Shown here one piece after another: positions 27,901-34,866 of a DNA stretch of 64,000 nucleotides. The first letter of the stretch is position 1; each line of letters begins with the position of its first letter. The notes under the pieces were generated by a model that worked only from the letters and a program-made list of their open reading frames with translations, searched no databases and had not been told where the DNA came from. This stretch comes from Asterias rubens (taxonomy: Eukaryota), in contig NC_047068.1 of assembly GCF_902459465.1 (NCBI RefSeq), positions 6,882,001-6,946,000 on the forward strand, written 5' to 3'. Made by a program: the position numbers and the translations under genes.

Positions 27901-30498
27901 AATCATGATACAACAGTGCTAATCCTTCTTAAAGATTTGTTGCATCTCTTCACCCAGGGGTATAGGTACCTGTGAGTGCAGAGATGGTTCTTGTGATTGA
28001 TTTAGCTTAAAGCCATTGGACACTTTCGGTAAACAGTAATGTCCAAGGCCCACACTTCGTGTATCACAACTGTTATGTAAAATAACAAACCTGTGAAAAT
28101 GTAGGCTCATCGGCCATCGGAGTCGGGAGAAAATAACGGAAAAACCCACCCTTGTTTTACCACGTTTCGCCGTGTCATGACATGTGTTTAAAATAAATCG
28201 GTACGAGAATTGATATTGTTTTAATGTTTTCTAGAAAAGTAAAGCATTTCATGGAATAATATTTCAAGAGAAGACTTTCACCATTACCTTCTGTAAACCC
28301 TGTAAGTTATTTGTAAATCTGGTAACTTTTATTTTTTGTTCTGTTCCGAAAGTGTATAATGGCTTTAAGGGAGCTTAGTAAATAATACTAATAAAGACTT
28401 GTAATGCGCACATATCCACCCTGCTGGGTATCCAAGGCACAGGTAAGGAATGACCCAATTAAATAAATGGCCCAATGACCAGTGAGGGGTATAGGGTTTG
28501 AGCTGCATGAAAATCATTGCTAAACAAGTTAGAGCCCTACATGTATATGAGAAGCCACGATTGTTATCAATAATAATAATAGTAATAAGACATTTGTAAA
28601 GCGCCTAACGCAAAAGCCTCTAAGCGCATAAAAGAAACAAAAAATAAACAATTAGAGAAAGATACAAGATACAAATAGGCAAATTACAAAAAAGAAGCTT
28701 TAAATAAATCAAGAAGCTTTAATCAAGAACATTTAAAGATAAAATAAAAATGTCCACTGACACAGAAGCTGTATCTCTGTCTTCGGTAATGTTGAGTTCG
28801 TTGACCAGAAACTCCCTGTCGAGTGGCGTCTGTGGTTGGCCAGATTCTGAAGGAAAAAAAGTGAGAAAACAAATTTAGAAAAATTATTTGTTGGAAATAA
28901 GGTGATTGTTAAATTTGCAGAGTAAGTAAGGATGTAGGCATAGGTATCACCCACTAGGAGCCTGGCTGGGAGAGCAGAATGTACTACCTTCACAGGTAAA
29001 CTTGGTATTTCTAAGTTTGCAATCTTTTGAAATAATCTCAAGTTCTGGTTTTCGACCTGTACTCTCATCTCAAGTGTTAAGGTCGCATTAAGTAGGCAGC
29101 TTTTAAGTCATGATCACAAAAGTGATTTCAGTAAAAATATTATAGGGCCATAAAATTTGGAGGAAATCAAATAGACTGGCCTGTTAATGGGGGCTATGTA
29201 GGAGTACTCCTAAAATAGTTGGTTCCACTATTGTCTTGTGGAAACAACAGCGGAACAAACCTGTAGTTCCATGAGTGCTTTTTGGCGACCCCAACCAAGC
29301 CAACAAGTCGGTTACCGGTTGGTCTGAACAGCATCGTCACCATGGTTCAACCGAACACGTGAAAACGCTCAACCAATGACCAAAGTTTCTGGCTGGGTCG
29401 CCAAAACCACTCCAGGAGTAGGTCTTGGTGTATCATGACACACGCACCTGCAGTAAGCACCGATGATGTGTATTTATATTTGTTGAATTCCAGGTACTCT
29501 CGGATCAGTTCATTAATTAGCATATTCTCATTACTGAGCGGAGGTCGAGGGTCGCTCTGGTCATCTAAGGCATGGAATACCTCCGAGCGAACTCTGGCCT
29601 TGATTTGACCCATGACCCCTCTGGATTCTAAGGTCTCTTTCAGAACTGAAGTAGAGAAAGAAAAAAGTACTAAATTATCAAAAGATTTACAAAATTTCTA
29701 AATTTCTATTAGAAAAAATTTTCTATTTATTTTAATTTTTTTTCTACTCCAATGCTAAATAAGAAATCACACTGCTGCCTCAGTGTTGTTGCTGAATGAG
29801 GTGGGTTCACATTGATTACCTGCTGGGGATATTCTAAAGTATGGGGTTTGTTCCGCTATCGTCTCCACAGTGGTACTAGGGACCGGTACGGGGTACAGTA
29901 GTTGCAATAATCGTAACCGTCCATCCTCCCAACCATCCCTCCCGATGGTAGTTGCGATAACGTAACCCTCCTCCCGACGGCCACCAGGCGGCAACGTAAC
30001 CCTCCTCCTACCGCATCATACGTCAATTTATTAGAGGTATTTTTTTTTTTTTGTGGTAAATATGAGTTGTGGCAGAAATACGGAAATCTTCCCCTATTTA
30101 ATAACTTGCCTAACTTTATAATCACCTTAATTAATTTTTTAAAAAATTATTTAGTTCCATCAACCATGCATCAACCATGCTAGTTCTACATGATTACGGG
30201 GCAAGTAGATCCAAATCGACTTTGATCATGGACTCATTGCTAGAAGAAAGAATGATTGATCTTGATCTTAAAAAATGTTTACAGTTACACTGCTGCTGTG
30301 CTGAGCTGAGTCACTGAGTCTGAGTGAGAGTGTCAGGACAGTGTCCAGGTAGGTGTCACGGTTTCAAGCCCTAACTAAACAAAACACAGAAATAGTTTCA
30401 GCAGTCACACCACTCATATTCAAGTTAAACATTTGATGCCAAGTGAATACATATTACAATCATGAATTACCAGCTTTAAGTTCTTGCACGGATGTCAT
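24977..30498 (-). CDS. CEP20: Centrosomal protein 20 / FGFR1OP N-terminal-like (LisH domain), 5 exons, 169 aa
   Basis: Minus-strand exons 30498-30471 (MTSVQELKA), 29645-29448 (LKETLESRGVMGQIKARVRSEVFHALDD...NMLINELIREYLEFNKYKYTSSVL), 28846-28762 (SGQPQTPLDREFLVNEL), 26265-26126 (PLLYSILSHF...) and 25035-24977 (GVYHGSHGEPLVFKGGRR*). Total 510 nt, GT-AG, phases consistent. The last exon is the least certain. Confidence 0.9.
25317..25610. repeat. 52-bp tandem repeat, about 5.7 units, each with a 7-bp hairpin
   Basis: Unit ttcaattgtggaatagtaaaactattctctcttggttcaaccatcattctat; period 52. Located in CEP20 intron 4. Confidence 0.95.
26297..27688 (-). mobile_element. 5'-truncated L2-clade LINE (ORF2 reverse transcriptase and C-terminus, 3' UTR, (TTA)n tail) in CEP20 intron 3
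   Basis: More than 400 open codons with RT motifs FQSAYKPFHGTEAAL, LLDLSAAFDTVDH, YADDTQLY, KLNDDKTE, RNLGVIFD and LHWLP, ending AAPRIWNSLP...FKSLLKTYL. L2-type 3' end gcgccttgaacaccc...gtgcgcattacaagtc(tta)n. No endonuclease domain. Confidence 0.93.
28011..28364. mobile_element. Kolobok-like MITE, family K2 (second copy 52444-52807, inverted)
   Basis: TTAA|agccattggacactttcgg ... ccgaaagtgtataatggct|TTAA. The internal sequence matches the 52444-52807 copy in reverse complement. Confidence 0.85.
28380..28632 (-). mobile_element. Two solo LINE/SINE 3'-tail stubs
   Basis: 28380-28442 is nearly identical to the 3' end of the LINE at 26320-26370. 28570-28632 is a related (aat)n...tgtaaagcgcc...aagcgc stub. 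Confidence 0.7.
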
Positions 30499-30612
30499 CT
30501 TTGCAGCTTGTTTGGGGACAATATCTGACTGCAGTTTTCAAGTCGCCGTCAAAATCGCGGGCAGTGTTTATAAAGGGCGCCCTCTTCTGCTGACAATACG
30601 TTATTTAGAATC

Positions 30613-33408
30613 ATGGCGTCCTGGGAGACGAGTTTCTATGCAATTTGTGTGTCCATTTGTGTTCAAATTTTGTCGGGTGAGTAGCTTCATTCTGCCTTTA
30701 AACTAATGTTATTTGGAAGATTTAACATTGACAAATGTATGGTTTAAATTGAATGTCGATATAGGGTAACTAAAAGGATGAATTTCAAATTTAATTCGCC
30801 AAAACTTTTGACATGTTAAATTGTTATGTTTGTTGATTTTGATAAATGGTTTTCATTGGAGATTCTTTTCATTCATGTCATCCATTGCTGATCTCCGCCA
30901 ACAACCAAACACTTTTTCAATATGCCGTTATTACGCTCTATACAGCGCTATAAAGCCCTAATAGGGCGTTATAATGCCTTATTTTACAGCGTTATAATGC
31001 CCTATATATATTACTATTTACGCCGTAATAACGCCCTAGCTATAGTCTATACCGTAACCTTGATATAGCATTATAACGCCCTAAATTTAAGGCGTAATAA
31101 TGCCCTAATTGAGGAATATAAGGGCGTTATTACGCCCTAAAATAACGCCCTATTTAGGGCGTCATGTGCCATACTTGAAAAAGTGTTTAGTTATTGGCGG
31201 AGATCAGCCACCGTACGTATGAAGTCGTACTAAAATCGTGGAATGCCAATGAATGCCAGCCAGTCAATTCGCCCCCACCATCAAATTCGCCCAACACAAA
31301 GTCGCCACTCACAACCCCTGACTTGTAGTTAGTACATGTATGATGTAGTTGGCGAGTTGGCACTTGCATACTGTGTGTGGGGATGGGGGCAGGTTGACTG
31401 GATTCCATTGCATGTGATGTACTGTCAGATTGTTGACTATTTTGCTTAATTAATTAAGTACTGACATTTTCTTAAATAGGGTAGAGGTAGGTAGCTGCAT
31501 TTGAAGTATTAAATTTACACAGTAAAAAGTTTAAAAGTTCCAGAATTTGTTAAAATTCGTTTTGATTGAATTGAATGCTGCCAATTTCATAGAACATTTT
31601 TTTCTTCATGTTAAAATGAAAGAATTATGTTTGTCAAATAAACAACTTACAAGTTTCCTGAATAATTATTACAAGCAATCAAACAGAGATATTTTTGCCT
31701 TTCTGATTCAGTTTTTCAATGTAAGAATTTTTTCTGACTTAATAATATTCTTTTCTTTCTCAGTACGGACCAACACATGGCAGAACCCTTCTTGCGTCAT
31801 AGTGGACCCTAATTCAGGTCCTTGCTTGGACGTCTTCTTGCGTTACTTTGATGGCTACGAATCAGCCATTGGGGCAGGGGAGCTTGTCCATCATGAATGG
31901 GTCGAGTACCTTGGCTACGTTTACGACTACAATGACGAGAGTGATACAGATTGTCAAATAAGTCAGTTGAAGTTTGATGTTTTATTATTTACTTTTATCA
32001 GGCAAAACGGTTAACAGAAAAAATTCAATAAAATACAAAGAAAACAATGGGGGGCAATGCAGGGGGGGGGGGGAGAAGGGAGAACGTTGAAACCCTAAAC
32101 AAGACACAAATGAACAACAGATAAAACCCAGATACAACACTGAAACAGAGATGCATGCCTGAGAGATTGCCTAAAAATCTTAGAAACTTCTGGAGAGTCC
32201 TTCCATGTAGGAAGGAAGAGAAGGAGCTCGAACGACCCGCAAAACCGTAGAGTAACAGAAGAATACCCTGTCAATGCCCCTGTCTGACCAGTGGAAAAAA
32301 AATAGGAGACCTCCAGCTGGACGGCCGATTAACGAGCAGGATTAGATCTCTTTGCACAGAAGGTGTGGTACCGCCACTCTGCACCGTTGCCTTCGTGTAA
32401 AGTTGAATCATTGGAGACAAGAATTGTGAATATACACGTTTTCATTTACCGTTTGTGGTGTTTCACTGAAACATCATGGCATATTTTTACATTTTTTGTG
32501 ACTTACCGGTCACTAGCGGTGGTTCAAAATTTGGGTAATAGCACACGAGGGTGGTTGGTATTCAATTGTGTTTTTCGATTTGGTGGGCAAAAGTGTACAC
32601 AATTTTTATCAGGTCTCAAAAAAGTTGTTTTTTTCTGTATTATATCCATACGAAATACGACACCATAGTTGAGTGAAGAACCAAGTGCGCACGAGCAAAC
32701 TCGCATACGCCAGGTCGCTCATTGTCTGTATAAGGTATGTGGGTGATTACGAGGTGTCATTAAACGACCGCGGTACCACAAGTTCAACTTTTGAAGTCCC
32801 TTCGTTCGAGCTCCTTCTCTTCCTTCCTCCATGGTCCTTCCAACTTCACCTGCTCAATGGAAAAAAACAAACAAAACTTAGAAAAGATGTGGCAATGTAA
32901 AGGGCAAGACAATGAAAAACTCCAGTTGGGGTGGTAAACAACACCAGCAAAAGCAAAACAAAGTACCCTGGCAGGAAAAGCCAGAAGTGACAGAAATCCA
33001 CTTTCAAAGTGACTGACCTTTGGTTTTAGACAACCCCACCCTTACAAGAAGGAATACACAATACCCAGCCATGCTGTGCAACTAGAAAATAGACCTGTAA
33101 AAAATACAAAATTCAAAAGTTAAATCTGGACCTGCCAGCTAATTTCTTTTTTACTCAATTCCCCAGGGCAATCGTCCAAAGGCAACGAAGAATTCACCAA
33201 TGTGACTTGGACAAGGGATGGCTTCTCAACATGTACCCAGAGAGACGTAGATAACTTTAACAGCTGGTGGGATTTTGTCTGCGCAGGACACTGCACAGAG
33301 GATGATAACTGCAGGAGATATCCCATCTTTTTTGGGCAACATCTTTGGAATAATTGCTCCTGGGATGCCGATGAAGAGAAACCGTCTTATGATTTGAGGC
33401 TTCCTTGA
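30613..33408 (+). CDS. Unrecognised secreted Cys/Trp-rich acidic protein, 3 exons, 167 aa
   Basis: Exons 30613-30676 (aatcATGG start; MASWETSFYAICVSICVQILS; donor G|GTGAGT), 31764-31961 (acceptor ttcttttctttctcag; donor A|GTCAGT) and 33167-33408 (acceptor ttctttttactcaattccccag; TGA stop). Lengths 64+198+242 = 504 nt; both introns phase 1; no internal stops; exons GC-richer than flanks. Confidence 0.75.
30885..31210. mobile_element. MITE with TIRs of about 35 bp and internal ataacgcccta/gcgttat subrepeats
   Basis: gctgatctccgccaacaaccaaacactttttcaa ... ttgaaaaagtgtttagttattggcggagatcagc, in intron 1 of the orphan gene. Confidence 0.75.
32204..32833. mobile_element. 630-bp non-autonomous P-superfamily-like element
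   Basis: TIR of about 30 bp catgtaggaaggaagagaaggagctcgaacga / tcgttcgagctccttctcttccttcctccatg; perfect 7-bp TSD GTCCTTC at 32197-32203 and 32834-32840. CA-N-RG termini with a 7-8 bp TSD are the P-superfamily pattern. Confidence 0.75.
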
Positions 33409-33981
33409 AGAAAATTGCTAAAGAAGATGAGGGGGTGGGCTGGGGATGATAAAATTTGGGTCAGGGTTGCACCAGACAAACAGGGCCCAATTTCAAAGCT
33501 CTATGAAATCAGGCCACTTTTTTTTTTTCATTTTATTTAGACCTCATTCCAGTAATTTTTACATCTCATTGTAAATATAATTACTATGCACATCAAAACA
33601 AGACTGAAATTGTCACATCTAGGAGAAATGATTCCAGAACATAGTCCACTTTTTAATACTTGTAGTGGAAATGTTGGTAAAGTTTTATATTTTGGATGTA
33701 ATTCCTTTAAGTGGTCACCTTTGGAATGAATTATATAATTTATTTTGTAATAAGTCTTCTGTGCTATTATTAGATTTGCTTGGAAAAAACACCATGCACT
33801 TTATTTAACCACTTTAGATCTTTATTTGAAATTGATGTCTTTTTTGTATATATTTTGTCAATTGAGTAATTTCTAATGGTTATGGATAACTTTATATTGA
33901 TATGTTGAAGCTTTGGAGAACTTAAAATTGTATCGGAAGTAATCTTATCAGGATTTTTTTTTTGCAAAAACAATGTTAATG

Positions 33982-34320: not shown

Positions 34321-34866
34321 AGGGAAGGTACACGTTTGGTAATTATTTAAAACAAGTATTAACTTAAAAACTGACTTGGTAACGATCATTGGAGAGCTGT
34401 TGATAGTATAAAACATTGTGGGAAACGACTCCCTCTGAAGTAACGTAGTTTTGAGAAAGAGGTAATTTCTCACTAAAATAATAAAAGACTTCTACCCTAG
34501 CTAGAAGTCTTTTATTCCTATCTGAAAGCACACAAATTCGTCAACCAGGGTTTTTTTTTTCTGTCATAATTTTCTCGCAACTTCGATGACCAATTGAGCC
34601 CAAATGTTCACAGGCTTGTTATTTTGTGCTTATGTTGAGATGCACCGAGTGAGAACACTGGTCTTTGACAAGTACCAAACGTGTACAGTGCATTTAAGCC
34701 TGGTTTATACTTCCTGCGAATGCGATACAAATAGTGACGTCCCAGCCTTGTTTTCGCTGCGAATTTTTCCCCAGAAATTGAGCGCATTTCAACTGATGCG
34801 AATTATTCGTTGGGAATTTGATATGTAAAAATTTGTATCGCATTTGCAGGAAGTATGAACCAGGCT
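34321..34866. mobile_element. Diverged Kolobok-like K1 copy (34321-34693) abutted by a family M MITE (34697-34866)
   Basis: TTAA|agggaaggtacacgtttggtaatt...aagtaccaaacgtgtacagtgcat|TTAA; then agcctggtttatacttcctgcgaatgcga...gcaggaagtatgaaccaggct with TTA TSD. Confidence 0.8.

Follow-up and report, generated by a model that had tools for sequence, protein, structure and literature searches.

The 64,000 nucleotides of the Asterias rubens genome analysed here (the window: NCBI RefSeq assembly GCF_902459465.1, contig NC_047068.1, positions 6,882,001 to 6,946,000 of the forward strand) carry a gene for a small, cysteine- and tryptophan-rich protein of 167 residues. To judge from its reading frame, splice sites and relatives, this is a real, single-copy, three-exon protein-coding gene, and it belongs to an unnamed family that, by alignment, is conserved across Ambulacraria, in sea stars, urchins, brittle stars, sea cucumbers and acorn worms. 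We consider it probable that these two statements hold together with a third, that the protein is a disulfide-stabilised domain of the secretory route. The gene call itself is ordinary, and annotations of related genomes already list it as an "uncharacterized protein". The noteworthy part is the family, which is single copy, strongly constrained, found only in echinoderms and hemichordates, and itself undescribed, with no Pfam model, structure, literature, or usable AlphaFold or ESM model. Such families are where undescribed deuterostome biochemistry may still sit. For the present the protein is filed among the small secreted disulfide-rich proteins of unknown function.

The initial annotation had proposed three coding exons separated by two phase-1 introns, and direct reading of the window confirmed that model to the base (Table 1). 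The joined exons give 504 nucleotides without an internal stop, and their translation matches the one proposed earlier. The start codon, ATG at 30613, is well placed by the Kozak rule (A at −3, G at +4). Both introns are of the GT-AG type. Exon 2 is preceded by a pyrimidine tract, ...tttctttctcag, ending in CAG and is followed by GTCAGT, and the exon 3 acceptor reads ...ccccag immediately before 33167. At the orthologous locus of Asterias amurensis (L003) the three exons recur with identical splice-site sequences. Both large exons occur once in the 417.6-Mb, 150-contig genome of A. rubens. A motif scan places the first AATAAA on the plus strand downstream of the gene at 34480.

Indications of transcription come from two sources. 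A sequencing run guessed to be RNA (X15) contains 0.94 of the sampled words of positions 33167–33520, which cover exon 3 and the 3′ untranslated region (UTR), compared with 0.20 of those of the 3.1-kb gene span. By our own count, about 0.20 of the 31-mers of the gene span lie wholly within exons and UTR; the figure for the run is thus close to the exonic share, which is an indirect sign of a processed transcript. In a seawater metatranscriptome labelled as RNA the corresponding fractions are 0.61 for exon 3 and UTR and 0.08 for the whole gene span.

The comparison with the closest relative shows that the exons evolve as coding sequence. A search with exon 2 found the A. amurensis orthologue, an NCBI "uncharacterized protein" of 167 residues (P0001) that is 97% identical to the window protein, both overall and within the exon 2 match (E = 1e-37); an ENA-derived fragment (P0002) is 75% identical over exon 2. 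Over 100 synonymous and 401 non-synonymous sites, the two Asterias genes show 11 synonymous changes and about 8 non-synonymous ones, the latter confined to five codons. The rates of synonymous (dS) and non-synonymous (dN) substitution are 0.12 and 0.02, and dN/dS is 0.16 for the whole gene and 0.12 for the mature part; the excess of synonymous changes has a binomial p of 3e-4. In exon 3 the count is 9 synonymous changes to 1 non-synonymous. Divergence between the two species is 3.8% in exons and 8–16%, with indels, in alignable intron sequence. In the comparison with Patiria, dN is no more than 0.2, with synonymous sites already at saturation. Selection on the gene, as read from these substitution patterns, is strongly purifying. 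The initial annotation had suggested a dN/dS comparison with orthologues, and it comes out firmly on the side of a functional gene, with frames intact in ten species.

The few amino acid replacements are not evenly spread. Codons 51 and 54 (about 31850–31861 in the window) hold 5 of the approximately 8 non-synonymous changes between the Asterias species, with GAT (Asp) replaced by AGA (Arg) and GAA (Glu) by CCA (Pro). They lie in a variable loop that precedes the invariant Ser55 and represent a clustered multi-nucleotide change within an otherwise frozen protein.

These data bear on the simplest doubt, namely that there is no gene here and that open frames and splice-like sites have lined up by chance, or that the transcript is non-coding. 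Against this, frame, length and all eight cysteines have been preserved in ten species, as have the intron positions. There is an excess of synonymous changes, the introns have diverged more than the exons, and exon 3, unlike the introns, is represented in the runs guessed or labelled as RNA. The A. rubens product itself is not among the matches in the protein collection, a point that would suit the absence of a gene, although records from the species' own genome were possibly left out there. Set beside the conservation, we find an accidental reading frame scarcely credible.

The family was assembled in two rounds, the first an exhaustive search of 1.84 billion representative sequences with exon 3 as query (phmmer), the second a search with a family profile. 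The first returned three clear full-length relatives (P0003, P0004 and P0005; E = 7e-26 to 3e-18), and the second gave nine full-length members, with E values from 1e-56 to 1e-86. They come from the sea stars A. amurensis and Patiria miniata (LOC119738663), the urchins Diadema setosum and Lytechinus variegatus (LOC121422909), the brittle star Amphiura filiformis, the sea cucumbers Holothuria leucospilota (HOLleu_18714) and Apostichopus japonicus, and the acorn worms Ptychodera flava and Glandiceps talaboti (LOC144435641). Four echinoderm classes and two hemichordates are therefore represented, at 41–71% identity over the full length. The members have 157–172 residues, and all are labelled uncharacterized or hypothetical, apart from a UniRef label of "Secreted protein" for the one from Holothuria. 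A third, relaxed protein search (E up to 10) added no members to the nine, and scans of viral, metagenome and prokaryote contigs with the family profile gave pattern matches only, none of them confirmed. In the literature, no paper was found for the orthologues' locus names or the family's peptide motifs. A Calx-beta-like repeat protein (P0006) also matched, at E = 6.5e-6, but over a short repetitive stretch, and was discounted as due to chance.

The orthologues share with the window gene the length class, the eight cysteines, the motifs YDY, WT..G.(S/T)TC, FN.WW and HLWNNC, and the structure of three exons with phase-1 introns. There is no essential difference between them, and the window gene is the A. 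rubens orthologue. The positions and phase of the introns are identical in both Asterias species, Patiria, Lytechinus and Ptychodera. Because both the orthologues and the intron positions are common to echinoderms and hemichordates, the gene dates to the ambulacrarian ancestor. The description of the gene as an orphan, or as lineage-restricted, consequently falls with the discovery of these full-length relatives.

The protein has two parts. Its first 18–28 residues are hydrophobic in all ten proteins, and it is the hydrophobicity of the exon 1 region, not its sequence, that the orthologues have kept. In a hydrophobicity scan, the 12-residue Kyte–Doolittle maximum reaches 2.2–3.1 within the first 25 residues of every one of the ten. 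Most have V, A, S, G or T at −3 and −1 ahead of a conserved asparagine (Asn25), and the position of intron 1 coincides with the boundary between the hydrophobic N-terminus and the mature part. The signal-peptide-like first exon described in the initial annotation has, by these sequence features, a counterpart throughout the family.

The mature domain is almost free of indels. It has 143 residues in seven of the eight echinoderm proteins (144 in Amphiura) and 138–139 in the hemichordates, with an isoelectric point (pI) of 4.2–5.0, eight cysteines and 6–7 tryptophans; the acidic, Trp- and Tyr-rich character noted at the outset is borne out. The family alignment (A2) has 38 invariant columns, among them all eight cysteines, at positions 32, 42, 85, 110, 126, 130, 136 and 151, with the spacing C-x9-C-x42-C-x24-C-x15-C-x3-C-x5-C-x14-C. 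Further invariant columns are His65, Tyr75-Asp76-Tyr77, Ile87-Arg88, Trp102-Thr103, Gly106, Thr109-Cys110, Phe118-Asn119, Trp121-Trp122, Asp133, Asn135, His146-Leu-Trp-Asn-Asn-Cys151, Trp153 and a C-terminal proline, and the window translation carries every one of the family motifs. The two sequons are present, at N99 (NVT) and N150 (NCS). Every echinoderm member, but neither hemichordate, retains the one at position 99; the NCS sequon falls within the invariant HLWNNC, and its conservation need not reflect glycosylation.

The initial annotation saw in this protein a lineage-restricted secreted effector, with a part, for example, in defence, adhesion, biomineral matrix or chemical signalling. 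The signal-peptide-like N-terminus, the cysteine-rich and acidic composition and the failure to match a known domain would all suit such a role. The gene, however, is spread over four echinoderm classes and two hemichordates, shows no paralogue expansion, has a dN/dS of 0.16 or lower and a mature domain that hardly varies in length, and is without the repeats or low-complexity acidic tracts typical of matrix and adhesive proteins. In sea stars, moreover, it stands head to head with the centriolar-satellite gene FOPNL across a spacer of 114 bp. Single copy, one-to-one orthology in two phyla, constant length and low dN/dS together exclude a young, fast-evolving effector, and we hold a lineage-restricted, fast-evolving effector of this kind to be very improbable. 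The role of the protein looks instead to be a conserved, physiological one.

Our preferred reading is that the N-terminus would be a cleaved signal peptide, cut just before Asn25, and that the mature protein would fold compactly into a soluble domain, stabilised by disulfides, that works in the extracellular space or in the secretory or endolysosomal compartments. Polar and aromatic residues are prominent among the invariant ones (His65, Asp76, Arg88, Thr103, Asn119, Asp133, Asn135, His146, Asn149 and Asn150, with six tryptophans), and the protein most likely works by way of a conserved polar and aromatic pocket that binds a conserved small ligand or catalyses a reaction on it.

Searches for a known family or fold bear out the statement of the initial annotation that no family is recognised. 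Pfam models matched the exons, the A. amurensis protein and all nine members only as sub-threshold noise (Pox_P35, PAN_1 and DUF3242), and a search of PDB sequences with the family profile gave no match at E up to 10. AlphaFold2 (AF2) runs on full-length and mature-domain alignments reached predicted local distance difference test (pLDDT) scores of 44.3 and 43.7, and fold searches with the better model (pLDDT about 44) returned noise. A suggested echo of the Kunitz N-terminus did not survive. The Kunitz/BPTI model (PF00014) finds no match at E up to 10 in the exons, the A. amurensis protein or the nine members. The likeness is limited to a short local C-x7-GPC followed by an aromatic-rich stretch, whereas Kunitz/BPTI is a domain of about 55 residues with six cysteines and the mature domain of the window protein has about 143 residues and eight cysteines in a quite different spacing. 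Resemblances to RNase T2, whose HEW motif is not conserved in the family, and to secreted phospholipase A2, MANF, ependymin and beta-trefoil lectins were likewise rejected on motifs.

Within the same gene and family reading, the mechanism may be of more than one kind. It is possible, though on balance doubtful, that the secreted protein has no catalytic activity and serves as a ligand or binding protein, be it a signalling factor, a carrier or a lectin-like module. Four disulfides would hold it together, and the invariant Trp, Tyr, Asn, Asp and His residues would make up a surface that recognises, for example, a glycan or a receptor. An even number of cysteines, all of them invariant, a small, acidic, aromatic-rich domain and the lack of a match to a catalytic family are what such a protein would show, and strong constraint with one-to-one orthology also suits conserved ligands. 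Yet no similarity to a known ligand, lectin or hormone family was found; two His, three Asp, four Asn, one Arg and two Thr make a large set of invariant polar residues for a module that only binds; and the neighbours of the family in the ESM Atlas are enzyme families.

These neighbours are the source of a more specific lead. The A. amurensis and Lytechinus proteins, with 54% mutual identity, have the same Atlas feature neighbours. Clusters without names from molluscs and giant viruses score 0.90–0.93, and an unnamed bacterial cluster scores 0.91 with the Lytechinus query only; the named neighbours are CLN5, at 0.90, then IcsB_M, TseH, Lnb_N and DUF3750. We take Lnb_N to be Pfam's name for DUF4105, and the MARTX toxin structure PDB 5XN7 to be an IcsB-like Rho-inactivation domain. 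CLN5, DUF3750, DUF4105 and the MARTX toxin (PDB 5XN7) have been described as papain-like (PMC10318531). CLN5 and PPPDE are circularly permuted His...Cys enzymes, and CLN5 is a soluble, glycosylated, disulfide-containing protein of the secretory and lysosomal route (PMC9012467). By analogy, the family might consist of very small, circularly permuted, papain-like thiol hydrolases or acyltransferases resembling the PPPDE/CLN5 type, a tentative idea that we think unlikely to be correct as it stands.

In its catalytic form, the preferred reading would place His65 on a beta-hairpin and Asp76 on an adjacent strand. The nucleophile would be Cys110, where a predicted long helix begins, or else Cys151 of the HLWNNC motif. 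His65, Asp76, Cys110 and Cys151 are invariant and occur in that order, which is not specific, since 38 columns are invariant. The low-confidence AF2 secondary structure has strands at 67–70 and 73–76 and a helix that begins just after Cys110; His65 stands at the start and Asp76 at the end of the predicted hairpin. The likeness to permuted papain-like enzymes of the NlpC/P60 type, a group that takes in PPPDE1/2 (DeSI), CLN5, LRAT/PLAAT, TseH, Lnb_N and DUF3750, extends to size, with 144 modelled residues in PPPDE1 and about 143 in the window family, and to the placing of an invariant histidine on a predicted beta-hairpin upstream of invariant cysteines. However, the N-C-x-x-F type of nucleophile motif is missing from the family, the nearest sequence, N-N-C-S-W at 149–153, being a loose echo, and the spacing of the His-Tyr-Cys triad of PPPDE and CLN5 is not reproduced.

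Several observations weigh against this interpretation, in its secretory or its catalytic part. The n-region of the Asterias signal peptide has a glutamate and no basic residue. Eight cysteines, an even number, fit four disulfides without a free thiol, which speaks against a cysteine as the nucleophile. Neither AF2 model is good (pLDDT 44), and the searches of Pfam and the PDB found no profile or hidden Markov model similarity to any family. Alignment of the family (A3) by hhalign with Lnb_N (30 sequences) and DUF3750 (14 sequences), both built from gammaproteobacterial genomes, gave probabilities of 0.4% and 0.1%. The two Atlas queries are orthologues and hence not independent, scores near 0.9 also occur for 4–10% of shuffled proteins, and a query with the hemichordate mature domain alone, for which the Atlas model is poor, gave no usable match.

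The hhalign result is itself limited in what it can say. A control alignment of Lnb_N with DUF3750 reached only 0.3%; because this control is also blank, the comparison excludes membership of Lnb_N and DUF3750 and does not address a shared fold. When the A. rubens genome was searched with Pfam models, CLN5 and DUF3750 had no match, and Lnb_N had a weak, sub-threshold one (E = 0.66) on another contig.

Such likelihood as lies beyond the papain-like and ligand readings is spread over other enzyme types and structural roles. A bolder proposal, which we judge improbable, is that the family founds an unrecognised protein type: either its disulfide-rich fold is new altogether, or it is a secreted, circularly permuted papain-like thiol hydrolase or acyltransferase of very small size, analogous in function to CLN5 and PPPDE. 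If it were true, a single-copy gene would have been kept since the common ancestor of echinoderms and hemichordates while being invisible to current sequence, profile and structure-prediction methods. Should the papain-like lead hold, a secreted thiol enzyme would be new to ambulacrarian biology; should it fail, the domain would be a candidate for a new fold.

Table 1. Features of the gene and its surroundings (positions in the window)
Feature	Position	Strand	Description
FOPNL-like neighbour (FOP_dimer/LisH), first coding exon	30472–30498	−	Begins MTSVQELKA...; divergently transcribed
Promoter-proximal block	30564–30585	+	GTGTTTAT..AGGGCGCCCTCT; 22 nucleotides (nt), about 30–50 nt upstream of the ATG
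Exon 1, coding part	30613–30676	+	Codons 1–21 plus 1 nt; hydrophobic, signal-peptide-like N-terminus; donor G/GTGAGT, then phase-1 intron
Intron 1	30677–31763	+	1087 nt; old element resembling a miniature inverted-repeat transposable element (MITE) inside; alignable parts 86–89% identical to A. amurensis
Intron 1 element	30887–31208		Older, MITE-like; 34-nt terminal inverted repeats
Exon 2	31764–31961	+	198 nt; Cys32, Cys42, His65, YDY75–77 motif, Cys85
Intron 2	31962–33166	+	1205 nt; young high-copy element inside
Intron 2 element	about 32200–32878		33-nt terminal inverted repeats at 32203–32235 and 32802–32834
Exon 3, coding part	33167–33408	+	WT..G.STC110, FN.WW, HLWNNC151, Cys126, Cys130, Cys136; TGA at 33406–33408
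Proximal 3′ UTR	33409–33516	+	96% identical to A. amurensis

Upstream, the gene stands head to head with the FOPNL-like gene, with 114 bp between their start codons. A. amurensis (L003, 5887–6000) and Patiria (L004, 9887–10000) share this arrangement, and in both the ATG-to-ATG spacer is again exactly 114 bp. The spacer has the look of a compact bidirectional promoter that different sea-star orders have retained. A three-species alignment of the spacer shows that the promoter-proximal block is conserved in A. rubens, A. amurensis and Patiria, and it may well have a promoter role; it is TATA-like (TTTATAAAGG) only in A. rubens. In Asterias, SRP68 lies downstream of the gene. Neither FOPNL nor SRP68 occurs within 10 kb of the orthologue in Lytechinus or Ptychodera.

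Each intron holds the remains of a transposon. That in intron 2 is a non-autonomous element of about 630–680 bp, and the corresponding site in A. amurensis is without it. The A. rubens genome has at least 40 near-full-length copies at 93–94% identity, among 474 first-look candidates, and this combination of copy number and identity suggests a recently active, high-copy MITE-like family. The element in intron 1 has internal palindromic subrepeats of the GGGCGTTATAA type and many diverged copies in the genome (65–85% identity). Intron 1 of the A. amurensis orthologue carries a Ty3/gypsy-type retroelement open reading frame of 1436 residues, with reverse transcriptase, RNase H and integrase (L003, 9084–13718); this element, which is not present in the window, lengthens the A. 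amurensis gene to 12.8 kb.

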